The notes under the pieces are model-generated. The model did no database searches. It was given only the letters and a program-made list of their open reading frames with translations, and was not told the DNA's origin. A DNA stretch of 64,000 nt from Ruditapes philippinarum. Taxonomy: Eukaryota. The translations under genes were made by a program, and so were the position numbers. Below are positions 6,262 to 61,632 of the stretch, one piece after another. The first letter of the stretch is position 1, and every line of letters begins with the position of its first letter. The stretch lies in NCBI RefSeq assembly GCF_026571515.1, contig NW_026853658.1, positions 1 to 64,000 on the forward strand. The letters are read 5' to 3'.

Positions 6262-9200
6262 ATATATTTGGACCTGCGGTTACAAGTGATAAAAAATGTT
6301 TGGCTTTTGATAAATACAGTGAAACGTTTTGGCAATCCTGTAGTTTACCATATAAAAGTGTCTGCAAAACAAAAAGTAAATATGCTTAGCAACTTTCAGT
6401 ATTATTCCAATTCATGCGAAAAATTCAATATATCTATTAACAATTAGTTCCCACCTGCCTGTCATTTTTTCCGATAAAGCTTTGCCAACCAATCAAAACA
6501 TCCATTACATAGAAGCAGTTTTACAAAATAATCAACATCCACAAAGTCGGACAAGTCGTTAATTTTACGTTACAAAAAGAAATTTACTTGGAACTGAGGA
6601 ACATAAGATTCTATCATTGTTCGTATCTGAGCATCAATTTCAGGTTATATATTTAAAGCAGCACGCCTCCACATTTATCCTTATTTTCAAGAAAATTTTG
6701 AAACTGTATTTAAAAATAACATATTGTGAAATGATCAAAGAAAGTAAATTAACACATTGCAAACGGTACTTACAATAATTATTTTAAATTACCAAAAAGA
6801 GGGCAAAATATGCATAAATATCCCTTACTGCGTTAGTAACGCAGCAGTAGAAATATGATAATCAATACTGCAAAATCAGTCATTCGCAGCACATAAGATA
6901 GTACTTGAATTTTGAATCTTTTTATCATTCTTACAATCTTAGTTATCTTTCCAAAGTTGTATTGTCTTAAAATATTTTAGCTCATCTGGAGGCATGCATC
7001 TTTAAAAAAATATGATGTATGTATATGTATTCGTAATGTCTAGAAATCATGAAAACACTTTTTTCTCTCTCCAACTGTTAATAGGAGATACTGATACACT
7101 TTCAAGAATGCAATCTAGCGGCTACTGAATGGCTGATTGAAAGGTCATGAGAAGGAAGGTTATTGGTGACTACCAGTAATTAAAAAGCATTAAATATGTG
7201 CTGTTTGAACCAGACTGACCAATACTGGGAAAGGCGCAAGTCGAATCCAATTTTTTTAAACTGTGTACGAGTCCAATGGAATCAGAATCAGTTTTTTTTA
7301 AGAATCCAATAGAATTAGTTCTGTATAAGTCCAATATAATCAGTATCATAACCTATATTCACTGCTTCAATTATTTGCAAATATATACTTTGCAGTACTT
7401 TGTTCATTTGAGTACAATTTATATTGTATACGAACTCATATGGACTGTGAAAATGAAAACTTGTAAAGCAATAACATTGTTTGCATCTTTTTTTAATTCT
7501 AAGATGGAACATACATAAGTGGTTTCGCAGGACAACAATCGTTACTTTCATGGGCATCATATATCAAGCAGTGTTTTAAAAACATCTGTTACCCAATCAC
7601 TTTGGAAGATGTCCAAAACAGACCACATCAACTTTACGAGCTTGCAACAAGCTTAACATGGACACGTCTTACACAAAGCACTGTAATTTATGGGTTCAGA
7701 GGTGTGTTTGTATGTTCATTAAAACATCGTGGCAAACATTTTCCAACAAGAAGATAATTGTATATATAAATAGACTTGGCTGATCAATTATAAACGATTT
7801 CTGTATCGATTTTGCTTTAATGATTAGAAAATTGCAGTTCAAACATACTCGTATGTATAGCAGGTAAAGCAGGCGTCTGTTTAGTATAATCATGTTTTGT
7901 TCAGTACTACTCAATGCATCTGCAAATGAAATTTTTGATTTCCTTAAAAACAGAAAATGACTTAAATCGCAATAGTTTTATAGTTGATAACATTTGTTTT
8001 TTAATCTTATCATTTTTTGTTACATATTTTATCATATGATCATTTGTACGAATACACGCGATCGAATGATCGACTAATGAAAAACTATTTGACAAAGTCC
8101 TTTCATATTTTTTATACAAATTGATCGTACCGTCATTCACTTCTGTTAAATTCATGTTTATTCACTAAGAGTAATATAAGTGTGCATCTAAGGCCATCCA
8201 ATCCGGCACCATCATAAATGATTTATAGCTTCTGAAATAATTATAATCATTTCTCATTTTAATATAAAAACAACCTGGCAGTATTTTTTAATTTTATAGA
8301 AAGACACAAATCATTCTTTGGTCAAAATAAAATCATATGGTAGTTGACAATATTTTTTAGAATGATATGATTATCACTTTATATATTTTCATAACAGAAT
8401 TCAACACAACAATGAACATATCATACGGCTATCTTAAAAGACAAGGTGAACATGTAAATATGCTTTTTACAGAAGACGGTAATGTAGCTAAACGAACCCT
8501 TTTTGAATCACGTGAGTACATTAAAATGAAAGGATTACGGGAGTTATACATGTTATATAATTTTTATGATATAAAATGTGATGAGAAGAAATTTATTAAA
8601 ATGTTCTTTTTATTTGCTAAGCTGTTAATCAAATTACAACAAACTGTATTTCAATTATGCGTTACAGCGATAAAGCACGATTTCGTGTGAATGTGAATGA
8701 CAAGACCAGTGTAAATGTATAATTGACCTTTAACCATATTCGGTACACGCAATTTTGGATTGTTAAGCTATCATCAAACATAAAATATTGTTAAAGCGAA
8801 ACTACAGTAATGCTTCAGAATTATTCTATTTTGTTTTAAAATGATATGAAGTCCATATTGTGATATGTTTGAAATTTAGCTGATGTAAAAGAATCATCAA
8901 CATCCGTATCTCGTGAATCATCAACATCCGTATCTCGTGAATCATCAGCATCGAAAACCTCCATAGGGTCATTCGCATCAGAGACAACGAGCGTTCCGAT
9001 TAAGGAATCACAGATGGGTCAAAGTAAAATTACCTTTATAATTTACGAAATGATAGAACATTTTCTTTCTTGTGTTAATATTTAGACATAGGTTATTCAT
9101 TTATGAATATTAAAATGCATATCTTTCGGCTGTAGCATCTATCATAATAACATTTAATGAACTGATATTTTGTTGAAAGTGTTGTTATGTCGTTCGATTT

Positions 9201-11790
9201 TGTAATTATTTTACCTGGCTTGATATTTTTTTTATTAAAATACATTCCTTGGGACGACTTTCGGGTTTAATGAAGGTTTATTTTGTTCAGTTTTGTTTAT
9301 TGTAGCTGACTTACATGTCGATATATTTTGCAACTTATGTGATGATACTTACGCAGCCCCTAAGGTGACATTCTCGTTTTTACGAAAAATTAATTCGTTT
9401 TTACGAAATATTAATTCGTTTTTACAAAATATTAATTCTTTTTTACGAAATGTTATTTCATAATTGCGAAATAATAATTCGTTTTTACGAAATATCAATT
9501 CGTTTTTACGAAATATTAATTTGTATTTACGAAATATTATTTCGTAATTACTAAATATTAATTCGTAAAAACGAAATCTTATTTCGTAATTACGAAATAT
9601 AATTCGTTTTTACGAAATCTTATTTAAGGTCATTGTGAGCTTGACAAAGAACCTACTAATCTCACTTATGGGTCATTTACAAGCCTATATCAACCTTGCG
9701 ATTATGAGCCGAATGGTACTCAAAATTATTATATTTAAGTGAACTGGGTTATTTGAGTGGGAAGTCATTCTCTATCCAAAATGGCCTCTTTTCCCCATTG
9801 TCAAAAACATATTCCTATCAGCAATGTTTTAGTATTTGTGGCAATTAATCAGAAAAACAGAAACATGCTATATTATTCCTTTCTTTTATCATATATTCGT
9901 ACATTAGTAAAACTAAATGGGGGGGGGGGGGTCTCCGGCCTTTCACTAATCAATCAATTTAAAACGAATAATTCCTTACATTTAATGTATGGGTACCGTG
10001 CGATCATAAAAACATAATATTTCATTTCAAAACTCAATAATTTGGACAAAACGAAAAAGAAAACCATGTCCGTGTTCTTAACTAAATTTTCCTAGCGCGT
10101 GTACTATCACGACTGTGGCTCAACGCGACTGTTCTAGTTTATATACCATGATAGTGTTAAGTTAACAAAACTTGGGGAAAACAAAAATTTATATTACATG
10201 CCTTATTTTTTTCAGTCAGGAACTAAGTTTTGAGGCCTTATTTATAACTATTTCCAAAACTTTTTGAAACCCTAAAAAGATTTAATTCGTTTTTACGAAA
10301 TATTATTTCGTATTTACGAATTATTATTTCGTAATTACAAAATTATATTCCGTTAATACGGAATAATATTTCGTAAAAACGAATTAATATTTCGTAATGA
10401 CGAATTAACATTTCGTATAAAAGAATTAATATTCCGTAAAAACAAATTAATATTTCGTAATTACAAATTAATATTTCGTAAAAACGAATTATTATTTCGT
10501 AATTACGAATTATTATTTCGTAAAACGAATTAAGTTCCGGAAAAAAAGTGTTGAAAATGTCACCTTAGGGGCTCCGTAGATACTATAGTAAACATTGACG
10601 TTAATGTGAAAAACAACTCATTGTCGTCATACGAACTTAAAAATCATTCATTCGGCGTTAACTTTGGTTAATTTAAGGTCTTAGTCTACTGCTATAGCTA
10701 TTCAAAGTTCAGATCTGGTGCTAAAAACAACACTGTATTTTACTTATTAATAATATACATTAAAGTTGTAAACAACAAAATGACTTGAGTATATTTCAAC
10801 GAACCTTGCTGTTTTATTTATTGATGTCGTCATGTCATTATATGTCATTAAGATGTTTATTTATCTCAAATCCTGCTTAAAACGAAGGTATTGTGTGGCT
10901 CCATAACTTTGTATAAGGAAACATAGGGGCACATGTATACTAAAATAAAACAAAAACTAACGTATGGTCACAGACTGAAGGCACTTTTCTGAACTTCATT
11001 TGCATAAAAATCGCTTGGACCCGTAAAGTATAACCTGATCCAAGATACAACTTCCTTTTATCGACTAAACTGAATGAATAATAGTCTAGTCTATCCATAG
11101 TAAATTGTGTTTTCAGGCTCCTCTATAATCGTTCCGGTAGGTGTTTCGTCTATTGCTGTCACTGTCGTTGTGCTAGTTGTGGTACTCGTCGTATTAAAGA
11201 GACGGTATTGTATTTCTATGAATACTTGCCTATTTTACATGTTTAGCAAATATATTAAAAGACAATTATAATTTTCTAAAGTGAAAATTTTAATCAAACC
11301 ATTGTAAATTGTATGTGTCTATGTGATGACATAGGAAGTTTTTGTTTTTACTATTATACAGAAACTGTTATTAATGAAAATGAAAAAAATATATTAATGA
11401 ATGTAAACATGAACTAACCAGTTAAGTTTAAATGATGAACACAAATAAAAAGGGGTATTAACAAACTTGTGATACAGATTCAATCTAAATAACGTATTGA
11501 AAGAATTTATTTTCCTTTTCAGTGGCAAAATCCCACCCACATGTTTCAGAAATGTTCAATCTGATTCTTCAGAATATGCCACACCAGAAATTCACCGAGT
11601 TGATCAACATGACTACGCTTCTTTAGGATTAAATCAGGGTCAAGTTAGTGGGATAGAACTTCCTTCAACGACCTACACTGATTATAATGCCATTCATGGA
11701 AATAACGAACATACGTATTCTGAATTAGAAACACATGCAGAGGCATCCAACACTGATGCAAACATTGAAAGTCATTATTACAGATACTAG
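6262..11790 (+). CDS. Receptor A (5'-partial): CTLD1 C-half, CTLD2, stalk, TM, short ITAM-like tail
   Basis: Phase-compatible GT-AG exons: 6262-6375 (KKCLAF..TFWQSC..SVC), 7504-7701 (SW..QC..YP..TWTRL..VIY), 8398-8511 (YGYL..), 8880-9023 (Ser/Thr stalk), 11117-11204 (TM IIVPVGVSSIAVTVVVLVVVLVVLKRR), 11523-11790 (tail). AATAAA at 12083. Exons 1-4 were not found in the window. Confidence 0.85.
6657..7001. mobile_element. Non-autonomous TTAA-flanked DNA transposon (Kolobok-like MITE)
   Basis: TTAA|AGCAGCACGCCTCCA ... TGGAGGCATGCATCT|TTAA. Related sequence recurs at ~42731-42990 and ~41959. Confidence 0.7.
9352..10576. mobile_element. Foldback-type non-autonomous DNA transposon with TA target duplication
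   Basis: TIRs TA|CGCAGCCCCTAAGGTGACATT ... AATGTCACCTTAGGGGCTCCG|TA. Subterminal arrays of a ~21-bp unit (ttcgtttttacgaaatattaa) lie at ~9374-9625 and, largely inverted, at ~10283-10535. Confidence 0.9.
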
Positions 11791-14978: not shown

Positions 14979-15294
14979 TATAGAAAAGAACTTACAGACA
15001 GAAATTAAAATATTAAATAGTGTAAGGAGTACATGTTGAGAGTTCATAAACAACAAGACAATTTTCAATATAGGTCTGCATGTACACAATTATATTTTCA
15101 TTATGAAAATATAAACACAATTTAAGTAATGGAACATAGGGGTTCGAATTTAAATAAATAACAGAGATGCCAATATGCGATTGAACAAGTATACAATTAT
15201 ACAAGTAAGTTATCTAAGTACGTCAGTCTTACTTAATTAAAAGTCTTATCTTATTTAAATCAGAACAGATTAACTGTATGTCATTTGCACTTTT

Positions 15295-16295
15295 TCATAT
15301 GTTGGAGTGTCTGTGGGAATTTCGGTTACTGTTATTAGTGTCGTCGCAAGCGTTATTATCATTGTGATATTAAAGAGACGGTAGTATACTTTTATAATTA
15401 CATTGATGTTGGAAGTACTTATATTTCTATAAACTGTTATATTCTCAAAAGTTTCATTTAAGTTTACATCTCTTTTTTTCGTTTTGGTTAAAACCATTAT
15501 AATTTTAATTTCTTTCAACGCAAACATGTCATCAAATCCAATTTGAAATGCGATGTTTGTCTATTTTTAAAATCTCTTAACACAAGCTCTTAAATAAGTG
15601 TGTGTAGTTTTAAATATGGAGAACATTTCACATAAGCAAAACCAAAATAGTTATAAAATAGAAAACATGCTTTTTGTAAAAAATACTTTGTTGCTTTTTT
15701 CAGGAGGAAAATTCAAATGAAGTGTTTCAGAAAACCCGAATCTAAATGTTCTGCATATATTTCCAAGGAATTACATCCCAACTTTAAAAATGATAAGCAT
15801 GCCTACGAAATGTCTTTATGTTCTCCTTATGATCAAATTGATGATTTAGGACTCCCATCAGAACGTTGCTCTGATCATGAACGAACTGATAATGTCATAA
15901 GCGGACACACCTACCTTATCTTTGAAAAACATACATGGGAATCAAAGACCGATGATAACATTGAAAAAAATACGAAAACAGAAACAAGCAATGTTTATAA
16001 CACACTGAACTCAAATGGAAACAACAATGGGAGTAATGAATCTGGAAAAACGTACGATACAACTGAGAAAGTAGCCATGAAAACGAAAGCTCAGCACGAT
16101 AAGAATATAGGTGACGATGCGACAGAAAACACATATATTCATACGGGTAGTAGACTAGTTAAGAAAGTCAAAAGTGACAACGTATACGGTGTTCTTAACA
16201 ATGTTGAAGGTGAAAACGATGATGTTGATACAAGAAATAAAAAGTGCCAGTTTAATGGAGGAGACACGTACAGTCATACCATGAAGAAATATTGA
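15295..16295 (+). pseudogene. Receptor B: orphan TM exon (acceptor lost) plus intact Tyr-rich cytoplasmic exon
   Basis: TM VGVSVGISVTVISVVASVIIIVILKRR ends at a phase-2 donor (15380/15381). The terminal exon 15704-16295 is homologous to the D/E/F tails (SPYDQI, HTYLIFE, NVYNTL, TYDTTEK, DNVYG, DTYSH). There is no usable acceptor for the TM exon: the nearest AGs are followed by an in-frame TAA at 15271. Confidence 0.75.
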
Positions 16296-18756: not shown

Positions 18757-18903
18757 ATATCTGACATATGTTTGCGGTTCGGATCGGAATATCCGTCCCT
18801 CGGTAACCCGCCCATGTGCGGTAACTCGACAGCCTCGTTACCGCCCAATGGGCGGGTCACCTTGGGACGGATATTCCGATCCGAACTGCATATATGACAG
18901 ATA
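18757..18903. repeat. Long GC-rich imperfect palindrome (hairpin repeat element)
   Basis: atctgacatatg..gcggttcggatcggaatatccgtccctcggtaacccgccca pairs with tgggcgggtcaccttgggacggatattccgatccgaactgc..atatgacagat. Confidence 0.85.
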
Positions 18904-22495: not shown

Positions 22496-24659
22496 AAAAT
22501 CCAATTAAACAAAATTTTGAAAACACGCTGCATGTTCTGAAATCTTCAAAGAGAGGGTCAATCCTTTTTTCTGTAAAACTCATTTATATGGTTAAATTCG
22601 TCCTGCAAGTGAATTGATAAAACAGTAAATCAACATTTAAAACATCTTGCACGGCGTTAATAAAATTATCCCAAAAATATTCTCACTCAAACATATGGTG
22701 CTTAGCAAAAGTTGAGTAGTATAACTGCATATTTTAAATGATAAACAATAATCTAAGCATGGTGACGATAAATCATACAGTAAAATGACAGAGTTGACAA
22801 CCTTTAATAAGTATCCCAGTAGAAGCAGACAAAGTACTTTGGTTTATTGTACATGATAACGAGAATATTTATATACATTCATATTGTGTTTTTTGACATC
22901 AATAGTAGATAAGTGAAATTCTACGAAAAACAAACTCGATCAATCTATTAAAAAACATTTCTTATTTTGAAGAGTTGCAAAACTATCAAAGCCGATGTAT
23001 TGTGTTTAATAAAGCACATAGTAAAACGTCATAATTTAACAGTAATGAGCAACATTTTCAATTAAGAATTGCTTATTTAAAATTCTAGAGCAAACTATGT
23101 TAAAACTTTAGGCTATCAACGCCATTTCATGTAAACTATTTAGACTTATCAATTTTGACTGAAACTTATTTGCATAAGCCTAAAATACGTACAAACTGAA
23201 CTTGTTAATCTTTTTTTGTTTATTTAATTATTTAACTTATTTTTATTTTTGTATTTTTTGTGAATTTTGGAATTAAATTTCAACGAGTTGGCCCTGCAAA
23301 CAGTAATCTCGCAAATTATACCACAAACAAACAAAAGTTCTGTTGTTATATATTTGTTTTTTTTTTTTCAAATACATAACTGAAGAATACAATTAAATTA
23401 AATAATTCTAAATAATTGCGAAATACGAGCAAACATAAGATTACGGATCTATAGTGCAAGAAATTCCAGACTGTAAATTTACAGCTTATACAATTTGCAC
23501 AAAATAAGGAATGTACTTAAGCAAAATGCTTGTCTCTAGGAAATATTCCACAGTGTCACTAAACATATCATTTAACCTCTTTTACACTTATACAAATCAT
23601 GGATGTTGACATTGTTATGTTGTTGCTCGATGACTGCATTTTCAGGAATAACTACCAAATAAAGATTTGAGTTAACCAAATTTTACGTTACGGTACATGT
23701 AAAAACACACTAATATTGTTTTGTTTCAGACTGCCTTGCAATTTTTGAGTTCTGATTTCTCGTAAAAGAACCATCATGTTATTGACTTTATCCCGTTGTT
23801 TTACTATCGTTCTAAAAAATGCATAGTTTGTCGATGAACGTTATTTATACATAATTAAAAAGATCTAGGTCTGATAATAAATTTTATTACTGGTGACTGA
23901 TTTTTTTCTTGGCTACTCAGACTACCACTGGCCGTACATCATATTCGGAAAGTTTTAAGTAAACATGTATGTTACTCAACATAAATTGTGATACCTAATA
24001 CTCATTAAATTTAGAATTATAAAATGTCTATTTAACGAAATACGTAAAACTGTTACCTTTTAAACATAACGATAGATAACTATGATGGCAGTCGCTCCAC
24101 CAGAGTCTATAATTACTTTCAAAAATTAAGCACTCTTCATTGTCCTTATTTCTTCCTACATTCATTTCTGAAATTCAAACAAACCTCAGAAAAAATGTAG
24201 TAGACGTTTGATATAATAATATCCAAATATTATTCAAAAAATTACAAAGATCGACATAAGACATTCAGCAGGACAGTGGAATTTACCCAATTTCCTGCTG
24301 GCAAGTCATTTTGCAGGACATTAATATTTTACCGAATGATCTGCTAGTAGGACATTCGGCAGAAGTGGATGATTGTTTGCACTGACAGTACCGACGATCA
24401 ACAGGCTCAATCAAAACGAGCCTTTTGTTGTTTTGGACTTCCTTTAGGGATTTTTATTTTCTCTATTTAACAGAATATCCTGCTTACTTTTGAATGTTCA
24501 TAATCATTAATACAACTTATAGTCATATTATGACTATACGTTACAACACTCAAAATAAAAAGAAATACTAAGGTGAAATGTTATACCAAAGAGCACATTC
24601 CTAACAAATAAGCAGTCACATAATATACATACATGTAATGCAGAACATAAAAACTTTTG

Positions 24660-24805
24660 ATGTTTGTTAGTTTGTTTCATTTCACGCCCTTTTTCCAACA
24701 GTATATCAGTCATATAGCGGGTAGTTTCCCAACCATCGTTCCTGGAGAGTTACACCAGTACTAGACTACCTTATTCCGCGCTAAATTAACACAACATCTC
24801 CCGGG
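24660..24805 (-). mobile_element. SINE fragment (Meta-SINE-like)
   Basis: Microsatellite-like tail plus cagtcatatagcgg...gttcctgg...accagtactag core. A similar core occurs at ~34990-35060. Family recalled from memory, not searched. Confidence 0.45.
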
Positions 24806-29291: not shown

Positions 29292-29346
29292 ATGTCGGAT
29301 TTTACAGGTGTATTTTATATCTTCTTGTGGATATCTTACACTACAG
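29292..29346 (+). CDS. Orphan or alternative signal-peptide exon of the receptor family
   Basis: ATG...G|GTAAAT, 55 nt, phase 1, encoding MSDFTGVFYIFLWISYTT. It has the same length and phase as exon 1 of C and F and shares the LWI motif with D and F. Confidence 0.65.
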
Positions 29347-30939: not shown

Positions 30940-31205
30940 ATGCTGTAGATCTATATAGTTATTGTGTATTTAAAATACTCATTTATTCAGTAATTTTTGA
31001 TAACTTATGAAATAGATCTTTATTATAATATTGTATTTAAAAGGCACGTTTATTCAGTATGTTTGTAATAACGTATGCTGAAGACCTATAAAATAGTAGT
31101 GTATTTAAAAGACTCATTTTGTTTTCAATTAAATAACTTATGATGTAGATAATTGTGTATTTGAAGGACTCATTTTTCTTTCAATATATTTTAATTACTT
31201 ATGAT
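30940..31205. repeat. Minisatellite, ~65-bp unit, ~4 copies
   Basis: Repeated atg(c/a)tgtagat...ttgtgtatttaaaa..ctcattt...ataactt. Confidence 0.8.
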
Positions 31206-43685: not shown

Positions 43686-46600
43686 ATGGCAAAAATGGCT
43701 GACATAGTTTTAATCATTGTATTTTGGATATACATATATAAAGGTAATGTATTAACTTATTTTATCTTTTAGATTATAGTATTTTGTAATTCATAGATTT
43801 AAGTACACGTATAACCTTCTGTAACATAAGTATAATAATTAAAATAGTAATTTGTAGAGTTAAGTACAAAATGTGAAAACTTCTTTAAGGCTGGCGTATG
43901 TTGGTGATTTATTTATTCAACATGGAGTTTAGTACACATTATTACAGATTTTACATGATTAAGCTAATGACTGTATGACACTAATGGATTTGAAAATAAT
44001 CACTTGATGTGAAATGTTTAATCGGTTGTTTTTGTTAATTGACAATTACATGTTGTTCTTCATATGTTAGCCTCAAACAATTTTTAAATAGTGTATCAAA
44101 CATTCTGGCTCATAAGTATGTGTATCCTTTACATACATAAACAATGGCGATTTAATCGGATGCGCAATTTCCATTTTTGTATGAATTCTTTCATTTCATG
44201 ACTTTCTACTATTGTGTGTCTGGTGAGAATTTATAGAAGATGACAGAAAGCGTGTAAATCGCAATAAAATTTATGTTTTATTTTATTATTATAATGTAAG
44301 GGTTTACCATCACAAGTATATCTAAGATACATGTATGAAATCGTACTGTAAATATAAAATAACCAGTCGCTAAAATACTACCTGACATAATTATTGCCCA
44401 ATAAAACCAATATTTATGAAGTATAATTTACAACATATATTATTAACTTCTCGTTGCTTTTAATGATTGCAAAAAGTGATGGATTGTAAATGTAAATTAA
44501 TTAAAATATTTGAAAGTATTTGATAGTGCGAAAATATGCTGTGGAACTTTAAACAAAACAAAAAGAAATTACATCATTGGTTCGCCCGTTTCGCTCAATA
44601 TTGAGATCATCGGTTTATTTTATTTATTTATTTATTAATTTATTTCATTTTTTATTTATTTATTTTGAGGCGCTGGTTCGATCCTCGGGCGAGGCGAAAT
44701 TTCTCCATAACAATTAAACTCAGACCATGAGTCATATTGTCATTTGTCTTTTGCCCTGATTCAGAAATCATTTAGGATAAAAAGTCAGTCAATTACAGTA
44801 AAATTAATATTTCTGGTTGGTTATCTGGTAAAGATGCAATGGTGATCCAAACGCCGATATATGACTAAAATGTGTTATAATCGGCGTTAAAAGCAAAACA
44901 AAATGGTTATTGAATGAGTGCAAGTTTAATACTGAATTTATTGAACGAGTTAAATAAAATAATATTATGCCAGCCTCTTGCATAATATTATTTTATTCAA
45001 CGAGTTCAATAAATTCAGTAATTAACTTACACGAATTTAATATTCTATTTATCAAATACTAAAAAATAAAGACCGCCTGTAGTATTACGCTAAAATTAAA
45101 CGCGTCTTAACGCTATGGTTGTATCATGGAAATGACGTCACGTCGAATTTTTAGGTAGTCGCAAAAACAGCACGGGTATTTGATAAAATAGAGGATATTG
45201 AATGAGTGTAAGTTCAATACTGAATTTATTGCACGAGTTGAATAAAATTATATTATGCGAGCCTCTGGCGAGCATAATATTATTTTATTCAGCGAGTGCA
45301 CTAAATTCAGTAATGAACTTACACGAATTTAATATTCTATTTATCACATACCCAAAATAAAGACCATTTAAAGTGAAATAAAAGTCATTTTTCATTGACG
45401 CGCTTATAGTATAACGCTAACATTTAGCGCGTCTTTACACTATGTTTGTGTAACGCTAATGACGTCACGTCAAAATATATGCACGGCCGTGCAATACCAT
45501 TTTTACGGAGTCGCAAAATCGGCACGGGTGTGTGATAATAGATGATATTGAATAAGTGTAAATTTTATACTGTATTTATTGAACGACTTGAATTATATGA
45601 TATTATGCGCGCCTCTGGCGAGCATAATATTAATTTATTCAACAAACAAGTTCAATAAATTCAGTAATGAACTTACACAAATTAAATATTCTATTTATCA
45701 CAGACCGTTAGAAGTAAAAAAAAGAACCATTTTTCATTAAATGTGTCAATAGTTGTCTTCGTTGTCGAAGAAATAATAAACAAAACAACAACAATACATT
45801 ATCAAACAAAAAATTTTAAAAGCCTGAATTGTGGCTAGTGACCCAATGAACAAAAACAAAAACCACGTGACAAACTTCTATTTGTCATCTTTCATTTGAT
45901 AATATTGATAAAGAAGTAAAAATACATCATTTATTCAGTATTTTAAGATCATTATCTCCACAAAATAGAACAGTTAATTATACTTAACAATAAAAAGATA
46001 TCTGAAAAAGCAAGGTCCCGTGAAAACAAATAAAGGAAATATAAATTATTTAAATTCTCTGACGCGACTTTATTTATTATCTTTGATGCACGATAATTAT
46101 TAGTGCAAAAATTCCTAGACACCTAGGCACCGACGTAAGCGGTATTCAGTGTCAAAACTATAAGTTTTTGATCCCAAAAGAAGCAGAAAATATGATAATA
46201 GATTTTACAACTAAACACAACACGTAAGACCTAATTGTATTATAATAAAAGAAATTGCATCATCATTGGTATAATATTTTGTCTTGCTTTGAAAGGAGCT
46301 GCATTTATTACACAATATAACACAACTTGGGAAAATGCAATTAACAATTGCACAATGGAAACGCCTACAATCATGTTCCAAGGAACAAAGAAAGATTTAC
46401 CCGTAGCCATGAATGCTAGTATTATTGGAAACGAAGCTGTGTGGGTAGGATATTATCTAGCAGCTACAGCCTTCCATTATGTTGGTAAATATTAAAAAAA
46501 AACAAAAAAACAATTAATACATTAAACATGTTAAAATCTATGTTTTCGATTGAATTATGTAAAACAAAGAAAATTGAAAATGAAAGTAATTTATTAACAA

Positions 46601-49600
46601 AGGAGACAGATAAGGGAGATGTAAGGGTCTATGCATGTTGACTTGAACAGTCCTCGATTAGTTTCAAGGTTGATAGAATCTGTAAATAAATATAATAGTA
46701 CAGTCTCTTTATTTTTATCAAGTACAACATTTTCCAAGTTACTGAAAACCAGGTTTTAACAGGATTATTACGTGTACATAATTATTTTGGGAAATACCTT
46801 AAACCGTTAAATTTTTTCTTAAAATTCTAGGCTGTATAAAAAAGGAAAATATGGCTGCAACAACTGAGTTTGAGTACAACACTCCGGGCTTATGTTACTC
46901 TGCATGCAACAAGACATATTTGATAGGTGTCAGCATGTCAAAAGTAAGCCTTACTTTATATCGTGGATCAAGAAAGTTTATTTATTATTTAAAACACAAA
47001 CACTCATATTTATTACTTATGATAATAAAAGGTTAAGTTATAAATGTATGATTGCATTTGACGTAAAAAGAACTTTTGTGTAGAACCATTTAAACAGATG
47101 TGATCGCATTTACAATAAAATAGTATATTTCTAGAAACAAAAAAAATGGTTCTGAGCAGTCCTTTTTCTAAAGCTTTGTAATAACTAAAGTAAGTAACGA
47201 TGAGAGAAACACCTTTTCACGGCATATTTTAGAAAAAAGTGTACATCAATCAATATAGCGAGTGGATGTAACTTCATATACAAATAAAATGTACGGGCCA
47301 TAAATCCCTAATGCATATTTTCCTTTATAAATTGTAACCCTTTCGAGATGTTAAAATAGTACAAAGCAAAAAAAAAATGTGATTTTACAAAATTATTTTT
47401 TGTCATTCAGTGCTACTGCTTTAACAACACTATTCCATCAAACAGGGCATATCACTTATGTACTCAGGGTTGTAAAACGCAAATGAATATTGCTTGCGGC
47501 AGCAACAATTACATTTCAATGTACACTACTTACTCGTACGGTGAGAAATTTACAACTTAACTTGAACAATTGCATATAACACATATATAAACATTATTCA
47601 AAAGTAAGAATAAAAAAATGACTTTATACTATACATTTATCGTTGGACGTTAGACAATGGTCAATCAAGTAGAACGATTTAAAAACACCTTCTGCCTTAA
47701 TGATGTGCATAAAGTTTCGTGTCTATAAAATCTTAACACATTACGAAAAATCATGTAACATTATACGCATAGGTATAATACACAGATGTTCCTAATGTAG
47801 TTTTCATAGAAAATTGCATTGTTTCTTTCTTAAAACTTTTTTTCAGCAAATCTTTTTCAGTGGAAGTGGAGGTGTCTTCAATATGATTCAAAAATTATAC
47901 GTCCACATGGATGTGGGAAAAACTGGGATCAGAAATAGATCAATATGTAGATTTAGTTGAGAAACAAAAATGAAAGCATATTTATTACTTATAAAGGATA
48001 GTTTAAATAATCTAAATACATACAAATGAAAATATTTTTAATGTAAAAAAAAGGTAAATAATTAAAAGAATTTAAATTGATTATACTATTTGTTTTTCTT
48101 TATTAGTCAAAATTTTAGACTAAAAAAATGGTACGGAAAAGTATTCATTTGTATTTGCAACCATTTTCAAAAGTTTTTAAAATAAAAATCTCTATTTTTT
48201 CCAAGATACGTATTTCATGAAATATAAAGGAAAATGGAAAAAATAAAAAAAAAATGGGGAACCATCAAAGAACGAAATTTTTAAATTGTCAAAATTTTCC
48301 AACATCACAAAACCGAACAAAATTTAAAGAAAAAATAACCTTGGGAATATGGGGCTGGGTCATTTCAAGTACTTTTTACAACGGGGGTTAATTTATATTT
48401 ATTTTTAAGGCAAATAAGTATGCTATGGAAATTATTGTGAATCATTTTAAAGGAAGTAAAAACACACGTTGAAAAGAAGTTAAGAATTAACTATAAACTA
48501 GTTTCATACTGTGCCTCCGTAAATATTAAAGAAATACACTTCTTCAAATGATAAGAAGTACCGCTGTGATGTAGTAATTGTAGCAAAGGACAAATTATTT
48601 CATAACAATTTCAATTCCTAAATGTCACTTCAGATTTAAAAGGTTGTTCATAGGCGTGAATATCTAAGATATTTGTTAAATGTGTAATATCCATTTTAGA
48701 AACATATCTCATATAACAAATGATAATACACATTATTTTCTTGTGAATAGATCATAAACCTCCAAACATAACCCCGAAAAGGTTTGGCTACCTTCAAACA
48801 AACGAGGCAAATGGCACAGTATTAAAATTTGATAAAAATAGCACAAGCCAAAGATACAGCCTTTGTCAAAATGGTAGGAAAACATGATTATTTTATTTAT
48901 AAATGAATACCTGGATGATTTTGTTATATGGAAAAAGGTAATTACAACAAAAATGAATTATGTGTAATCAGTTTTAAAACCTGTCAATCATGTATCTTGT
49001 AATTTACGCATTTTTTTAATTGTTTCTGTGTTTCCACAGTAAATTGTTGCTACCAATCATGACATTTACTGATAATTAAATTGTTATTTTTTTTATTTTA
49101 TTTTCTTAATAAATCTTAATAATACAAATCGTTTCAATGCCATCATATGAAACCTCTTTTATATAAAACCACAAAATGTTTTAAAACTACAAGTCAAAAA
49201 CTAACAACAATGACACGTGATAATTATACTGTAGAATCAACAAAAAGTCCAGGTGATGATGAATCTAGTCCGATTACCAGTGCTTATTCGCAAAAAACTA
49301 CTATAGAAACAACGGCACCAGGTAGAATTACCCAATCAAAAACAGACCAAGCTAGTGCAACAAAAGGTAAAAATGATGTTTTAGGAGGCCATTTCTATTA
49401 TGGTAACGTTGGAGATAGATACACTTTGTGAAATAAATAATTATTTATTCATCGTTTCTATTGTGGCTTCTATTCTGGATTATAATTAAACTGATTTTGA
49501 TACATATATTCAATCAGCCGTTGCAAAAACAAATACAGTTTAGTATAAAGTCATCGAATCTATGATTTATTTCAGACTCAGATATTGGCATCGCTGTTGG

Positions 49601-51290
49601 TGTTTTGATTGCCACTTTCATAACTGTTGCTACTGTCGTTGTAGGAGTTATTCTTATAAGAAGGTAAAAATTCTGATAAGTCTTTATTTTATCTTTGATA
49701 GTATGCATCAAGTTGTATCTGCAACTTGGATTTCATTCCTAAGGATAAATTTAATGGCAAACATAGCATTGTATCATAATATTAATACGTTTAGCGATGA
49801 CATAAACATTTCTCGATTTTTAATACAGTTCACTTATTAAATAACGGCTTTTATTTTGCGTCTTTCAGTTAAGATTTAAATGTAAGCTTTTGTATTTTGA
49901 AAGATCATTTAATATCTTTTTATGAAAATTTTGCGCTATAAAATGTGTGTTTTGTCAATTGTAATCTAAACGAGCGAACGAACGAAAAACCTTAATAGAC
50001 TATTGTCATAATTTCATGATACAGTGATTATATCATATGTTTAGAGATCTATGTTTATTCCGCTGTAGCGTGCAGGAGGTCAATTCAGAGAAATAGTGTA
50101 TATAATAAAGGAAAACTTGTTTCACTAAAGTAATTACATATATTAACACAGTCACATTATCTCATGTGGATTTCACTGAACAGTACCTCTTGTCGTGTTC
50201 ATGTTCATGTTCACAAAGTAGAAAATCTCAAATTCTAACACTTTTTCATTCATGATCGTATTTAAATGTGTGTGAAGAGATGGATTATACATCTTAATGT
50301 GCATTTTTTGCGAGTGAAAACAAAGTGGAGATGTTAGCAATTAATCTATTCTAAAGCATTGTGCGGTATATACCGGAATAAGGTATTGAGTGTGGTGCTC
50401 CAACACTTTCTAGCCTCATTTATGACATGATATTGTATAGCTACAAGCATCAAATTCAACCCCTTATTTTGTGATTCTAGAGAAACGGAGAAAGTCAAAA
50501 CTGTTCTAAGAACCCAAACACATTGTTTACACGATACTATAGTTTAGCAATTAATTTTAGTATTTTAACTATTCAAAGCAATATGAATCCATGATATTTA
50601 AAAATAAAAACATGTTTTGTCTACAGAGGGAAGGTTCCATGTATGTGTTGCAGAATATCATTGCATGACAAATCGTCAAAATGCACAATGAACACATCCC
50701 TAGTTAACAACTCCAACACAATACCTCTAGATTGTCCAAATAGAAAGGTTGGCGAAGTTGTTCCACAAACAAACATTGTATCAGAAGATGATGTCCAGGA
50801 AAATAACGGACATCTTCCACATGATTACTTTATTCTTGAAAAGACTGAAGCTGATAGAAATACAACAGTAGTTCAAGATGAGGTAAATGTGTATAACACA
50901 TTAGCGTCCAATGTAAAACAAGAGGCTAACTTTGACAATACATACGATACAGCAGAGAAAGCAGCTATGAAACTGAAGACCAAACACAGAGTAAAGGATG
51001 ATTCCGATGCGAATGAAACGCTTGAGGATGAAGATCCTTACAATCATTTAAATGAAGGCGAAAGACAACTGAAAACTGTCAGAACAGATAATGTTTATGG
51101 TGTAACACAAGATGATGAATATGCAAACTGTAGAAAAACTCACGGAAAATATCTTCAGGATGTTGAAGACACGTACAATCATACAAATATATTGCAGGAT
51201 GCTGAGGCAGTTGAAGACACGTACAATCATACAAATATATCTAAGGATGTTGAAGACGACACTTACAATCATACAAGTCCAGTTTCATGA
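43686..51290 (+). CDS. Receptor E: full 10-exon paralog; exons 5-6 disrupted by indels (pseudogene or assembly error)
   Basis: Clean exons: 43686-43743, 46296-46484, 46831-46943, 47411-47540, 48751-48873, 49235-49366, 49576-49663 (TM GIAVGVLIATFITVATVVVGVILIRR), 50627-51290. Exon 5 (~47847-47955) and exon 6 (~48206-48410) are recognisable only across frameshifts. Confidence 0.82.
44668..44902 (+). mobile_element. tRNA-derived SINE remnant
   Basis: B-box GGTTCGATCC at ~44675 and a 3' end ccgatatatgactaaaat...cggcgttaaaagcaaaacaaaa. Confidence 0.55.
44905..45702. repeat. Three tandem copies of a ~150-bp palindromic unit with spacers
   Basis: Units at ~44908-45056, ~45192-45348 and ~45540-45700: tattgaatgagtg..tactgaatttattgaacgagtt.aataaaataatattatgc-loop-gcataatattattttattcaacgagttcaataaattcagta. 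The spacers share atgacgtcacgtc...gtcgcaaaa..gcacgggt. Confidence 0.9.
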
Positions 51291-55202: not shown

Positions 55203-58200
55203 ATGGGGTTTATGTTAGAAACATATTATCTTCTTCTATGGATTTTAATTGATGCAGGTAAAAGATTCATATTCAATTAAATTAATATATTTAACGGTCA
55301 CATTTGTAAAGTTTTTGTTAAGTAAAATAGAAAAAAAAACGATTGTAAATAAATATTTGCATTGTATAGTAATAACAGTCTTTACTTCTTGTCAAGAAAC
55401 TTAAAAGGAAGCTTATTCCTTCTTAAATAATGAACGTTCAGCATATGTTCTCTTGCTTTGTTTTTTTAAATTGATTAATGGATTCATTCATTCATTCATT
55501 CATTCATTCATTGAATTGAAAAACAAAGCAAGATATCATATGCTGAACTTTAAATAATTTAAATTTCAGCTTGCACGAAAATGTTTAGAATATAAGACCG
55601 TTTAAGTAATCATTCAATAAACTGTTTTGTAAAATTTTGTTATGTTGAATATAACGAAACACTTAAATCGTCTTTAAAAAAGATAAATCCATTTTTATAC
55701 ATAAAAATACGCTGTATAAATATCGGGTTGTAAATTATTAGATCTTATGTAAAGAAATTTTATGACATACGCTTATAAAAAGATATAATATTACAGATTT
55801 GATCACACTCGATCAATATCTCTCATATTTAATCTATTTACTTTTATATATTTTGATATAGTAAAGTTAACTTGTATGTAACAGTAACATATAAATGCAT
55901 TATAAGTATATGTAACATATCATCAAATCAAATATCAAAAGCATCATGCCGAAATATCTTGTAGAGACATTTGCCAAATGTTTTTCCCTAAATGATGAGG
56001 AAATCGTTAGTCGTATAGTGGTACATGTACACAGCAAAATATTTAAAACAAAACGGGTTTGCTATGCTAATCGTTTTTCTTTTATTCTTTTTGTAAGTTT
56101 GCCGTTGCTTATTTAGCACAAAAATATTGCTTTGATGTTAGAAACATCGATTTGAATGTATAATATTAATACACAAATTCACAAATTATCGTAGATGCTA
56201 CATTTATAACGGAATATAAGACAACATGGAATACAGCTATAGACAACTGTACAATGGAAACTCCTACAATTATGTTTGAGGGCAAAGAGGCTGATTTACC
56301 CGTTAAGTATGATTTGGCGGGAAAAGATGATGTTTGGGTAGGATACTATTTAGGAACAGCACCATTCCTTTACATTGGTCAGTACATCATTGGTCAAATT
56401 ATTATTCAAATAAACAAATAATATTCCTTTGCTTAAATTAATTATTTTTCTTGAAATGTGATGCTTTTTAATAAACGAAACAAATAATAAGAACATATAA
56501 AATGACTTGTTTAAAAATTGTCTTTAATCATCAAAAGCATTACCTAATTCAAGCATTTTTTCTCGATCTTATCATTTTCATTTTTAAATGAGAGCGTTAA
56601 TTACTAAAATGTCTTATCATAAATGAAGATCTGTGTCCTCATTTTTTACTTTGTGCCATTTATAAAAAGTGAATACATAGCTTCTGCATGATTTATGCTG
56701 TAAAACTTAGGTTATATATTCACGTGTTGCATTAACCCTGTTTGTTTTTTACCATCCTTACGACCCAAGAACACGTGATTAATTCATAAAATTCAAACTT
56801 TAAAGATGATGATTTTTAAAATATGTTGATTAATTAATAGGTATGTTATACATCTAAGGTTGTTTGCATGTGGAAGGTATGAGTGTAAAAGCAGAATTTG
56901 ATCACAACACTCCAGGCCTGTGTTATTCCGCTTGCAAGAAGAAAGGCTTGGTAGGCATTAGCCAAACAAAAGTAAGAAGAACATTTAATTTTATCTAAAA
57001 TAAAAAGGAATTTAAATACAGCAATGTTGTTTTGTTTTATATTCTGAATTTATTTCGTTACTTAAAGCGGTATCATTTATTTTTAGAAAAAAAAAATCTT
57101 TTATATTGTTTGCTTTGGTGTCTTTAAATTAATTTATTGATCATGGTTGCTATGATTTAAGAATCTGATGTTCGTTTTTGTAAATTTGCGTGTATTTACG
57201 TATTCCTTTTCTACTAGTTCATTTTATGGAAGTTTCTATTTTTGTCTGGTAATTCTTTTTTAAAATCTTCCAGTGCTTCTGTTTGAATGATGCTGATCAA
57301 TCAGAGATTCTCAACAAAGAATGTGACAAAGGATGTAAGGATCAAAAACATATTGCTTGTGGTGGTGATAACTATATGTCAATTTACAGAATCGAATCAG
57401 CCGGTGAGAATTTATCTTTACAAACCGAGGACAACATAATTATAAAATGTCTTTTTGAGTTTATTTCTTTTGTTACCATAGCTTATGTATTTCCTTACAT
57501 TATATAATTTAAATGAAACGTTACAGAAACATTTATTTTCAAACATACAGCACAGGTCTACAATGGAGAAAAGGATTGTTTACTCTTTGAAACAAACAGT
57601 GGCGGACCGAATCCACAGTGGGCGGACTGCACGAAACCTCAAAGAATCATGTGTACATTAAGTAAGTCATTATTATTTTACAGCATGCTTTTGGGTTCAA
57701 AGTAAACACATCAGAAATGATTTATAAAATAAAAAAAAACCGTATATATTTGAACAAAGTAAATATTAATAGACTATGAAATTATCAGGAATTTGGATAA
57801 AATCGTGATCACTATTGGTATAAGAATATTTAATCAAAATGCAAAATAATACAACCTGCAATGCAAAAGTAAGTTCATAGTCTTTTTAAAATATAACTCC
57901 TCACTTAATGTTTATTTTAAGGCTTTGACAAACATTTCATCCTTCATTATGTAAGTCTATTGATTCTTTTGTTTTGAAACTTTACGGTGTTAAAAATCCA
58001 AAAAGTGTTAAAAGTGTAAAGAAGTTGAAGCAATTTTGGGAAACTAAACACGAGAATGTCGAAAATGCATTATTTGTATATTATATGCATATTCATATAA
58101 TATGAAAGTATATAAAGACTATTACAGATGCAATGTCGTGTTTAATAACTCCATAGTCTACTTGAGCGCATTTTCTTTTAAGTTAATTATGCTATAAATG

Positions 58201-61200
58201 TTGTACAATATGATTTTAGCACAATATTGTTTTTATAAGAAAGTCTTTTTTCACAAAAACGGAAGCTTACCGTCAATATTTGTTGTAAAATGTCTGCGTT
58301 GTTTTGTTGCTGTCGTCTTAAATAGAATCATGTATTGTACACTTTCCTTTATTGCCATCAAATTCTTTATAATTTTCTCGTTAGACAATGGCACAGTTCA
58401 AAACGCGCTTGATAATAACGGTGACATTCAATACAACAGTTGGAAAGAATCAATGCAGATTTGTTTCGATCTTCAAAGGGCTCCTGCATCTCTAGAAGGC
58501 CTGAGAGGATTAAACATAATTACACCATCGTGGACAGGATTGATAAAAAGTGATGTAATATATAGCTACGGTAAATTCTTTTTGTTCTTTTTTAAGGGTG
58601 GGTGAGAGTGGGGATAAATCACAACGATACTTGCAACGTTCCAGCGAAGACTTGAAAAAACAATGACGTTCTGTACGTTTATTACCTCCCTCTATTGAAA
58701 TAATGAAAAACAATACTCTGGCGAGATTTGAACCACGTAGATAAACAGAAGTTGAATAATGAAATACTGTTAGACATCTAATACTCAAAATAGAAATACC
58801 ATACAATTATGTATACCATCAAGAAACATTTATTTTAACATGCTGTTATGTCAATTAAATTAGATACAAAATAATAAGATTCATTTGGATAAGGGCAACT
58901 GGTATTTTAATCAATAATTTTTCTAAAGAATCAATTTGTAATGAAATTATATGAATTGTGCATTTTGACGTTGCTCGATAATCGCCACTCTCGTGTAAGT
59001 ATCATTACTTTTGCTGCTCTTGTCGTATAAATTACTTATTCTTCATAAGTTTTTAAGTTGACAGTGCTTATGTGCATATATTTTCCTCGCATAAGTGTGT
59101 GAATAAAATAAACGGTGCAATCAATGAATTATTTAATTATTTCGCTGCAAATAATCGAAAATGACACTACCCGATACACTGTTAGTCATATTGAGGTCAA
59201 TTTTTATTTTACATTAATAATGAAAACAAGAAAAAATCGCAGCGCCAAATGACCGGCGAATAAAGCGGTTGGAAAACTAGAAAACAAGTTTCCGGTCTGT
59301 GTTTCAAAAAAGCTGCATTATTCATGGATAAAGCATAAACTTCGAAGTCGAATTACAGGTCTACGTTTTGCAAATTTAAACATGTGCACTTCAGACATTT
59401 TCCCAGTTTTTTGTTATGTATCTAGCTTTTTACTGGCTGGTCTTTAGGGACTATTACATTGAATTTGAACAAATGAAGCAAGTTCTTCTCTCATAAATTT
59501 TATCACCATATTCTTATTCAAAACTCGATATTTGAATCAATGTGTTCTTTCGCAAATTAGATGAAGCAGTAACTTCAAGCGTATATAAAAAGTGTGGATA
59601 CCTTGACAAGAAAAAGGGTGAAACCGTCTTAAAATTTGAAGACAATGACAAAGAAAAAAGGATTCTTTGTAAAAAAGGTAACTTTTTAACATATCTCAAA
59701 ATCACTACAAGAATAGATAACGTGCGAGTAGTAGCAACCTATTTTATTAGGAAGAAATATATGCATACGAAAAAGTTTACGTGTTTATATGTTTCACTAT
59801 ATTTTAATGGACAACTGAGACCACTTTATCATTAAGTTGACAGCGTCAAAGAAATAAAATTTGATTCTTTATGGAAACGAAATTTACACATTGGGTCCTG
59901 ACCAAGAAGACAAGTTGACATTTTTAGAATCAAGCTTTGCACTAAGTTTCTTGTTAAAGTAATTTTTAACTAAAAGTCAAATTGATATCAACATAATTGC
60001 TTTTTCGGCAAAAACATGGCATTACTTCGATCGTTAAATGTTAAAAAATAAACTGAAAGTTCACATACCCTTTTGGTTCACTGAACTTCTGTGTCCATTG
60101 ACAGGTTACTATATTTCAGCCGTCATTGTCATTTCTTCTTTTATTTTGACATTATAGGAAAAGATATCAACAAAACTATAGCAGATAGCAGTGGTGAGAA
60201 CTTAAATATGTTAATAAAAAAGGAAAATAAGTATTTATTCAATGATTTTAAGTATTAGTAAGAAACAAGAATAAGGTTTTTAATAAAAAGGTTTTAGCAA
60301 ATGTTATTATTCATTTCAATTACTTTTGCAATTATAGATTATGTCCAGTATAAAAGTTATAAAAGTATTTGAAAAATGATAAGTGTGAAAGGCAAATGAA
60401 AGAGTAACGGATAATTTCTAAAATCATATATGCCAAACTTTTTAAAATCTGTATTTTTGTACCTTACTGTTGTTTTATACCAAATCATTCAAATTGCGTG
60501 GCTTATAAAAATAACAGCTTTTAAAATATGTTATGTCTATAATAGGCTCAGATGTCGGACTAGTTGTGGGAATGTCATTGTTAGTGGTTTTAGTTATAGT
60601 AGCGATCGTCATAGGAATTTTTGTTTTAAACAAAAGGTAAAATCAAGTTAACATTTTATTATTGAAATAATTTACACGTTCTTATGATTAATCTGGCATA
60701 ATATTATTCAAAATGGACGAATTAGTTACCACAGGTCTGTGAATAAGAACATTTAATTTGACTCGGAAATATTGACAATTCGTAGTTTGTTAACTTCAGG
60801 TATATAAAACATATCATATGATCTTTCATTTGCTAACAGTTCTGATTGATACGCAAACCATATGCCTCAACTATCATTAGGTCAGTTTAAACAGTTCATT
60901 ATAAAGACATTAAATTGTCCCACATATTTGAAAAAGAATATTTTTTCTCGAGCTTTATATTAAGCATTTAATATATGAGTTGCAAACAACTATCATTTGA
61001 CGGATAACTGTTTTACTCCTATCATTTATGTCAATTTCAGAGGAAAACTTCAAGGTATTTGTTATAGCATTTCAACGCCCAAAACAACAGTTCAAACGCA
61101 AAATGTATCTGTGGTTCCAGACACGGCCTACGAAGCTCCTTCTGATTCTCCTTACAATGAAATCGATGACACAGCTTTGCAAAGGAGCACGGATACACCA

Positions 61201-61632
61201 GATGATTTCGATAAAGACAACGGAAATTATGCGCACACTTATTTCGTTTTGGAAGGCCAGGAATGGGATCGTCAAAAAGAAAATGGCATTGCAATGTCCA
61301 GACCTGGAGAGTCTGGCAACGAGTACAACACCTTGTGTTCTAATTTAAAGCACGGAAATAACACTAAACATACATATGACACGACAGAGAAAGCAGTTAA
61401 AAGACTGAAAGATCAACATGATAAAAGCATTGATGATATAAGATGTAACATGTTTGACGACGTGGAGGAAGATGATTACAACCACACAAGTGGTGAAGCA
61501 CTGAAGAACAAAAGAACAGATCATGTCTACGGCATACAAACTGGTGGTGAAAATGAGTATGGAGGTGTCAGTACAAATAATGAAAATGATCTTCTGGGAG
61601 AAATGGACACCTATAATCATATACAAGCTTAA
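55203..61632 (+). CDS. Receptor F: complete CTLD[WSC]-CTLD type I membrane receptor with Tyr-rich tail, 537 aa
   Basis: Ten GT-AG exons: 55203-55257, 56195-56377, 56859-56971, 57274-57403, 57551-57661, 58385-58570, 59561-59677, 60158-60193, 60546-60636, 61041-61632. They total 1614 nt in one open frame, with the same phases as D. Confidence 0.92.
55436..55548. repeat. 30-bp inverted repeat enclosing an (ATTC)n microsatellite
   Basis: gttcagcatatgttctcttgctttgttttt and aaaaacaaagcaagatatcatatgctgaac (2 mismatches) flank (attc)7. Confidence 0.85.

Follow-up and report, generated by a model that had tools for sequence, protein, structure and literature searches.

A cluster of six receptor-like gene copies in the Manila clam

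We analyzed positions 1 to 64,000 of contig NW_026853658.1 (154,845 bp) in the 1.41-Gb assembly of the Manila clam, Ruditapes philippinarum; this whole stretch is called the window below. The window is AT-rich (G+C approximately 30%), contains no undetermined bases (zero N), and the proteins it encodes are identical to RefSeq proteins of this species. Using hidden Markov models (HMMs) built for each exon from 14 family proteins, which gave E-values down to 1e-85 in the window, we mapped six copies of one multi-exon gene family, designated A to F, within 55 kb. This agrees with the roughly six paralogs that a first-pass annotation of the same sequence had counted. A six-frame self-comparison of open reading frames (ORFs) recovered five copies of the tail exon, all on the + strand, and four copies each of exons 2, 3 and 4, three on the + strand and one on the - strand. 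An intact member is predicted to comprise a signal peptide, a cysteine-rich head, a small second domain (exons 6 and 7), a stalk of variable length that is often Ser/Thr-rich, one transmembrane helix and an acidic tail of about 200 residues. Within the head, a WSC domain (exons 3 and 4) would lie between short segments (exons 2 and 5) that resemble the halves of a non-canonical C-type-lectin-like domain (CTLD).

Two of the six copies, D and F, are intact, and their features are as follows.

29292..41007, + strand: gene D (LOC132737467, XP_060580741, 547 aa), intact, 10 exons
29292-29346 (RefSeq), 34491-34685, 35529-35641, 35791-35920 and 36373-36492, + strand: exons e1 to e5 of D
36726-36920, 38068-38190, 39481-39504, 39904-39994 (transmembrane) and 40410-41007 (tail), + strand: exons e6 to e10 of D
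33181..33250, + strand: alternative candidate first exon of D, with Met, a hydrophobic stretch containing LWI and a GTAAAT donor in phase 1, found by a first-exon pattern scan
35529..35920, + strand: WSC domain of D, e3 and e4, split by a phase-0 intron
40410..41007, + strand: tail exon of D, with SPYNEI, HTYFVLE, EYNTL, AYDTTE, EDAYTHI, NYYGV, EYGD and PYNHI
55203..61632, + strand: gene F (LOC132737468, XP_060580742, 537 aa), intact and transcribed, 10 exons
55203-55257, 56195-56377, 56859-56971, 57274-57403 and 57551-57661, + strand: exons e1 to e5 of F
58385-58570, 59561-59677, 60158-60193, 60546-60636 (transmembrane) and 61041-61632 (tail), + strand: exons e6 to e10 of F
56859-57403, + strand: WSC domain of F, the equivalent of e3 and e4

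Genes D and F are intact and F is transcribed and spliced

When rebuilt exon by exon, D and F both displayed the intron phases 1,1,0,1,1,1,1,1,2, exactly the series that had been read from the sequence beforehand. The nine exons of D between 34491 and 41007 are bounded by AG/GT at every junction, and from exon 2 on the model matches XP_060580741 exactly. Its 5' end can be drawn in two ways. The RefSeq model begins at 29292-29346, while the candidate signal exon at 33181-33250 lies 1.2 kb upstream of exon 2 and joins it in frame. At 94% identity, the RefSeq first exon matches exon 1 of P0004, a strongly dissimilar paralogue the rest of which does not occur in the window; this suggests that D may have captured a first exon or promoter. 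For F, the junctions were taken from a search against XP_060580742, and the spliced translation equals that protein letter for letter. Both are listed by RefSeq as uncharacterized proteins.

Transcript support for the junctions had been named in advance as a check on the gene models, and F passed it. Four RNA runs were compared with F; in assembled contigs of three of them, from three studies, all eight junctions from e2 to e10 were seen as GT..AG joints at the predicted positions, and one 1598-nt transcript contig covers e2 to e10. Moreover, of the words sampled from F between e2 and the tail, about one-fifth were present in each of the RNA-type runs of nine studies, a fraction the size of the exon-only share. 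A raw-read RNA run yielded 14 reads on F and so carries no information on level or strand. F is transcribed and spliced as predicted.

The topology is type I, with an N-terminal signal peptide, a transmembrane helix followed by KRR, and a C-terminal tail. The transmembrane helix is the sole confident helix in an AlphaFold2 (AF2) model of full-length F, which was built from 11 sequences and is otherwise unusable, with an overall predicted local distance difference test (pLDDT) score of 31. In both D and F the stalk is very short (8-12 residues).

The head contains a WSC domain

The Pfam WSC model (PF01822) matched 7 of 15 family members at E≤0.01, with a best E of 3.3e-6, and a precomputed Pfam column for D lists the same domain. 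Scans of single proteins gave 19-24 bits, below the gathering score of 27.8 bits. WSC was the only domain recovered from the family by the Pfam scan. In an alignment of the 15 members, six cysteines of the domain (C82, C102, C106, C119, C121 and C135) are invariant and two more (C139 and C147) nearly so. An AF2 model of a 348-aa member, computed from 15 sequences, had a pLDDT of 61-78 across the WSC stretch and 46 overall, and only the WSC part was usable. Searched with Foldseek, this stretch returned as its top matches the sensor domain of yeast Wsc1 (7pz2; template modelling score (TM-score) 0.68, root-mean-square deviation 2.7 Å over 89 columns) and that of Kremen (5fws), with probabilities of 0.99-1.00. 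The structural neighbors of an ESM Atlas model of F comprised seven different WSC-containing families. The Pfam matches, the eight conserved cysteines and the AF2/Foldseek match together confirm the WSC domain that had been proposed for the head.

A short N-terminal segment resembles a C-type-lectin-like domain

The segment encoded by exon 2 contains an invariant WVGY, which is a WIGL-like motif. A family profile over this exon matched CD69 with E=2e-4, the best match of the N-terminal segment to the sequence of a solved structure. We also compared exon 2 by hhalign, a profile-profile alignment method, with a profile built from 20 canonical CTLDs of this clam genome and obtained a probability of 74%, as against 2% or less for reversed controls; after realignment the match covered 23 columns only, spanning the 'W..A...C' motif of beta1/alpha1. 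Exon 5 carries a C..W..C..C motif and aligned in the correct register, but its probability of 1.3% did not exceed that of the reversed controls. The second domain (exons 6 and 7) likewise scored 1.3% or less both against the clam CTLD profile and against the first domain, no better than reversed-column controls. Since these probabilities did not rise above the controls, we refrain from labelling exon 5 or exons 6-7 as CTLDs. The whole ectodomain in the Atlas model of F (pLDDT 0.60) aligned to a multi-CTLD protein with a TM-score of 0.42 over 180 residues; no CTLD was found among the structural neighbors when the model was restricted to residues 19-200. The short N-terminal motif thus lends the CTLD label of the head weak support. 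From the WVGY and C..W..C..C motifs it is plausible, if unproven, that the WSC domain is nested in the long loop of a CTLD whose two halves are encoded by exon 2 (beta1, alpha1, alpha2 and the WIGL-like motif) and exon 5 (C..W.DC..C).

The cytoplasmic tail carries a conserved array of eight tyrosines

We aligned 25 tails drawn from Ruditapes, Mercenaria and the window. The tail is acidic, about 200 aa long, and contains eight tyrosine columns in fixed order that are conserved at 76-100%. Tyrosine is the commonest residue among the most conserved positions, accounting for 7 of the 31 columns with at least 80% identity, and the array is conserved between the two genera. The contexts are SPY(D/N)(Q/E)I, HTYF(V/I)LE, NxYNTL, TYDT(T/A)E, (D/E)EDxYNH(I/L), TDNVYGV, (E/D)YG(D) and (E/G)DTY(N/S)H(I/T). 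The Pfam scan recovered no kinase or other catalytic domain in the tail, so the description of a non-catalytic tail studded with tyrosine motifs was borne out.

Motif counts were tested against shuffled tails, a comparison that speaks to the level of motifs only. The form of the hemITAM, a single-tyrosine variant of the immunoreceptor tyrosine-based activation motif (ITAM), written [DE][DE]xYxx[LI], occurs in 17 of the 25 tails, at 0.96 per tail versus 0.03 in shuffled tails; the strict form DEDxYxx[LI] occurs in nine. The YxxPhi form is present in all 25 tails at 4.96 per tail versus 1.90 after shuffling. The inhibitory counterpart of the ITAM (ITIM) is found twice in D, once in F and not in E.

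Partial and broken copies accompany the intact genes

The four remaining copies are listed here with their recognizable exons.

6279..11790, + strand: copy A, partial 3' part from per-exon HMM matches (e5, e6, e7, transmembrane exon and a short divergent tail)
6279-6368 (e5), 7539-7694 (e6), 8403-8501 (e7), 11116-11205 (transmembrane) and 11524-11790 (tail), + strand: exons of copy A
15295..16295, + strand: copy B, consisting only of a transmembrane exon (15295-15381) and a full-length tail exon (15708-16295)
24064..26658, - strand: copy C, inverted 5' part with e2 26482-26658, e3 25249-25374, e4 24873-24986 and e5 24064-24147
43686..51290, + strand: copy E (LOC132737474), broken, from the HMM map and a three-frame reading of 47350-48900
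43686-43743 (e1), 46295-46483 (e2), 46830-46943 (e3), 47411-47530 (e4) and 47843-47893 (e5 remnant), + strand: 5' parts of copy E
48753-48872 (e7), 49183-49365 (stalk), 49578-49664 (transmembrane) and 50628-51290 (tail), + strand: 3' parts of copy E

The exons of A, B and C have open frames and plausible splice sites, with AG/GT contexts in C. The per-exon HMMs found no exons 1-4 upstream of copy A, no ectodomain exons upstream of copy B on the + strand, and no exons from e6 to the tail for copy C on the - strand. The two exons of B matched with E=3.9e-6 and 2e-34 in intact splice contexts, and its tail is 71% identical to that of RefSeq LOC132757453. Exons e2 to e5 of C matched with E=2e-19, 2.6e-9, 3.3e-9 and 8.7e-4, and the closest RefSeq protein is XP_060569428. 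In copy E, the three-frame reading revealed a frameshift in exon 5 and the loss of its cysteines, and exon 6 was absent both from that reading and from the HMM map. The RefSeq model of E covers the C-terminal 302 aa only (P0005), and an intact relative, E', lies on another contig, C3599 (P0027). Intact, broken and inverted members thus all occur in the cluster, as the first-pass annotation had stated. Its further statement that each copy possesses a signal peptide, ectodomain, stalk, transmembrane helix and tail holds for D, for F and for E before its decay, but not for A, B and C, which are partial.

The tail of copy A has 88 aa and aligns to the 197-position profile over its first 85 positions only, diverging after the first third; this short tail (11524-11790) holds the only canonical ITAM spacing of the cluster (YNAI-x7-YSEL), together with YASL. 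At the end of the E-type tail (51189-51290, + strand) the last motif is present in extra tandem copies (EDTYNHTN repeated), and a relative from a metagenome record has at least six such units.

Other elements flank or interrupt the copies. Transposon remnants at 163-2231 on the - strand include an ORF for a BED zinc finger (740-949, E=1e-11) and one for a Ty3 capsid-like gag (1542-2231, E=1e-6), and these occupy the place where the missing exons 1-4 of copy A would be expected. A simple repeat at 5893-6192, directly upstream of the first recognizable exon of copy A, can be translated as FVCM repeats in one frame, and the opposite strand gives NIHT repeats. Two dispersed repeats (44905-45753 and 18499-18909) have inverted or direct internal copies and recur, 88-94% identical, at a non-collinear site of contig C3599 (87.0-87.8 kb); they are probably a mobile element. 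Just past the window, a seventh family member lies on the + strand at 66,946-72,712 of the contig and is recognizable from e2 to the tail. A further tail exon is found at 139,368 of the same contig, so the cluster reaches well past 61,632.

The family is large and appears restricted to venerid clams

The tail exon occurs in at least 33 places on about 15 contigs of the genome, 23 of them without stops. We searched exhaustively with HMMER for the tail among 1.84 billion representative proteins and retrieved 22, the four weakest of which are unrelated repeat proteins. All named matches are uncharacterized proteins of Ruditapes or Mercenaria, two venerid clams. The range of the family rests on this exhaustive search, as word-indexed searches found just 7 proteins with the F head, 13 with the family profile and 1 with the Mercenaria head. 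The literature search returned no paper on this family. The absence of any named family to which the cluster could be assigned therefore stood, and by these sequence matches the family appears to be specific to venerid clams.

Contig C3599 carries, at 48-83 kb, a collinear array D'-E'-F' that is 70-87% identical to the window at the nucleotide level, introns and spacers included. Contig C10698 (155-175 kb) carries a third collinear version, and the three blocks are mutually about 79-83% identical, non-coding DNA included. Because one diploid individual cannot hold three versions as alleles, at least one of the blocks is a paralogous block duplication; the existence of three mutually diverged blocks at about 80% identity likewise weakens an allelic reading of the C3599 block. 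The F' gene has the same ten exons as F. Between F and F' the synonymous divergence (dS) is 0.24 and the ratio of nonsynonymous to synonymous divergence (omega) is 0.46 overall, 0.38 in the head and 0.57 in the tail. Taken exon by exon, dS is lowest in e1-e2 (0.10) and highest in e5 (0.59), and this mosaic suggests that the copies have exchanged sequence. In the same vein, the F head groups with G/N-type paralogues (62-76% identity), while the F tail is closest to D (59%, versus 36-43% for others); this discordance of per-exon similarity upholds the earlier mention of chimeric members. The partial and broken copies, the block duplicates and the mosaic exons equally sustain the description of a tandem cluster of diversified single-pass receptors evolving by birth and death. 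The growth of the family has involved tandem duplicates, duplicated blocks, mosaic exons and decaying copies.

Comparison with known receptors

By analogy, the closest functional precedents for the clam family would be two transmembrane lectins of the oyster Crassostrea gigas, CgCLec-HTM and CgCLec-TM1, in which a hemITAM signals through Syk and ERK to IL-17 and TNF (PMC12842671, PMC13027682). Like the clam proteins as we read them, these lectins sit on the surface of bivalve cells and join a lectin-type head to a hemITAM in the cytoplasm, the form taken by the acid-preceded Yxx[I/L] sites (DEDxYNH[I/L]) in 17 of the 25 clam tails. In CgCLec-HTM the transmembrane helix lies on the C-terminal side, making it type I as in the clam family. 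However, each oyster lectin pairs a single canonical CTLD with a short, one-motif tail, whereas the clam proteins have a WSC domain, no CTLD detectable by Pfam and a 200-aa tail with eight tyrosines; the likeness is one of layout and motif and implies no sequence homology.

The cluster had also been likened to the natural killer (NK) gene complex and the Dectin-1 cluster, which include CD69, CLEC-2 and Dectin-1. The likeness stands for the birth-and-death mode of evolution, seen in a tandem cluster of rapidly diversifying genes in which some members are intact and others broken or rearranged. As in NK-type CTLDs, the clam heads have no residues of the Ca/sugar site, and it is CD69 that the N-terminal segment matches. 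The acidic YxxL/I motif of the clam tails resembles the hemITAM consensus DEDGYxxL. The likeness fails in other respects: the NK and Dectin receptors have type II topology and a short tail at the N-terminus, whereas the clam proteins are type I with long C-terminal tails and a WSC domain, and their head is only a candidate CTLD.

Other known proteins share the WSC domain. Fungal Wsc1, a sensor of cell-wall integrity, has a WSC head, a Ser/Thr-rich stalk (seen in many clam members), a single transmembrane helix and a cytoplasmic tail. However, its tail binds Rom2, whereas the clam proteins have extra head domains and a tyrosine-motif tail, so that WSC alone is shared. The WSC domain of Kremen1/2 matches the clam model (5fws, probability 1.00), and the ectodomain of polycystin-1 combines a WSC with a C-type lectin domain. 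Both differ from the clam family in architecture (Kringle-WSC-CUB in Kremen, 11 transmembrane helices in polycystin), and neither has a tyrosine-array tail or a tandem expansion.

Interpretation and alternatives

The interpretation we favor, and consider moderately likely, is that the cluster belongs to a large family of single-pass type I glycoproteins of the cell surface, receptors with a ligand-sensing head and phosphotyrosine signaling through the tail. In this scheme the head would bind carbohydrate or another extracellular ligand by means of its WSC module. Clustering of the receptors would then lead Src-type kinases to phosphorylate tail tyrosines, chiefly those in the two acid-preceded, hemITAM-like (E/D)DxYNH(I/L) sites, and the phosphorylated sites would recruit proteins with Src homology 2 (SH2) domains such as the clam Syk/Shark kinase, by the precedent of CgCLec-HTM and CgCLec-TM1. 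An immune role for the receptor cluster may be inferred, and the likeliest biological setting would be pattern recognition by haemocytes.

A number of results weigh against this interpretation. Lectin_C (PF00059) was unmatched in 7 members at E≤1 and in 15 members at E≤0.01, and none of 14 family ectodomains had the pair of an EPN/QPD-type triplet and WND; in the 20 canonical clam CTLDs used for comparison, the EPN/QPD-type triplet was present in 18 and the WND-type motif in 16. Because there is neither a Lectin_C match nor EPN/QPD/WND, canonical Ca-dependent sugar binding by a CTLD appears unlikely, and the CTLD that the first-pass annotation placed in the head was not established beyond the short N-terminal motif. 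The AF2 models of the head were poor outside the WSC domain (pLDDT 31 and 46, with the CTLD region below 50). In the tails, the ITIM form [S/I/V/L]xYxx[I/V/L] was found in only 12 of 25, mostly as SPY(D/N)(Q/E)I and at 0.64 per tail versus 0.31 shuffled, while the canonical ITAM, Yxx[L/I]-x6-12-Yxx[L/I], occurred in 0 of the 25 long tails, from which the immunoreceptor tyrosine-based switch motif (ITSM) was also absent. The conserved tail motif is YNxx and not the Grb2-type YxN; a YxN reading of YNTL and YNHI was rejected, as the Asn stands at +1 and YxN is depleted (0.40 per tail versus 1.27 shuffled). The conserved tyrosines could also serve a sorting or structural role. Finally, the proposed comparison of evolutionary rates revealed no excess in the ectodomain: in the single pair F/F', omega was below 1 everywhere and the ectodomain evolved no faster than the tail.

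The point about sorting is taken furthest by an endocytic, phagocytic or scavenger cargo receptor, whose head would capture glycosylated particles or glycoproteins and whose YNTL, YFVL, YNHI and YDQI would act unphosphorylated as AP-2 type sorting signals instead of SH2 docking sites. The 2.6-fold excess of YxxPhi over shuffled tails and its presence in every tail fit such a receptor, as do the type I topology, the lectin-type head and a tail free of kinase or other catalytic domains. However, the conserved tyrosines in YDTT/A, YGV and YGD, three of the eight, lack a hydrophobic residue at +3 and yet are 84-100% conserved, one or two sorting signals are usually enough, and the acidic DED context is better suited to recognition by a kinase and SH2 domains; we regard a cargo receptor as unlikely, though deserving of attention. 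Less probable still is a mechanosensor of the Wsc type, or a matrix or adhesion sensor, that reports contact or strain on extracellular polysaccharide such as mucus, chitinous shell matrix or biofilm. Its head-stalk-transmembrane-tail order is that of the clam proteins, where the model is confident its best structural match is the Wsc1 domain, and many members have Ser/Thr-rich stalks, with Ser and Thr making up 40-48% of the final 60 residues of the ectodomain in P0025, P0035, P0008 and P0033. Against this, the stalks of D and F have just 8-12 residues, similarity to the fungal sensors does not extend beyond WSC, and some 30 fast-diverging copies with pseudogenes better suit a recognition family than a housekeeping sensor.

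An allorecognition-type locus, serving self/non-self or gamete and larval recognition, would explain the diverged blocks as old haplotype lineages and the variable heads as devices for homotypic or conspecific recognition. Collinear versions of the array that differ by 15-25% even in introns, gene content that varies (E is broken in the window and E' intact on C3599) and mosaic exon similarity are all to be expected of it. We nevertheless hold it to be very improbable: three mutually diverged blocks in one assembly exceed what a diploid can hold as alleles of one locus, and the head omega of F/F' is 0.38. Bivalves are not known to require allorecognition of the colony type. That the cluster is no working gene family, but a set of decaying duplicates or annotation artefacts, is scarcely credible; partial or broken copies do outnumber intact ones in the window by four to two, but D and F have fully open ten-exon frames with canonical splice sites, the tail motifs are conserved across two genera, omega is below 1, and correct splicing of F transcripts in three studies refutes this explanation for F.

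Phosphotyrosine signaling by a type I receptor can also be joined with the more speculative observations into a fuller proposal, which in its entirety we consider doubtful. The WSC domain would be inserted in the long loop of an NK-type CTLD and followed by a second, minimal CTLD; the genes would form a venerid-specific immune receptor complex in which the eight-tyrosine hemITAM-like tails of D and F, the E-type tails with their EDTYNHT repeats and the short ITAM-type A tails would act through Syk/Shark and phosphatases, with outputs that oppose one another or are graded. The clam complex would then have arisen independently, as a type I counterpart to the NK and Dectin clusters of vertebrates.

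Possible significance for bivalve immunity

Bivalves rely on expanded repertoires of innate receptors, of which very few membrane-bound members have been tied to an intracellular signaling route. The family described here provides a defined and testable set of about 30 venerid-restricted genes whose heads contain a verified WSC domain in an unusual architecture and whose eight tail tyrosines are kept between genera. It also bears on the annotation of commercially important clams that face Perkinsus and Vibrio disease, since these genes are now listed as uncharacterized. If the tyrosines are indeed SH2 docking sites, the family would represent a new receptor class in invertebrate immunity and the first animal WSC domain in a tyrosine-motif receptor, and it would offer a natural case of a receptor cluster that evolved through duplicated blocks and mosaic exons.

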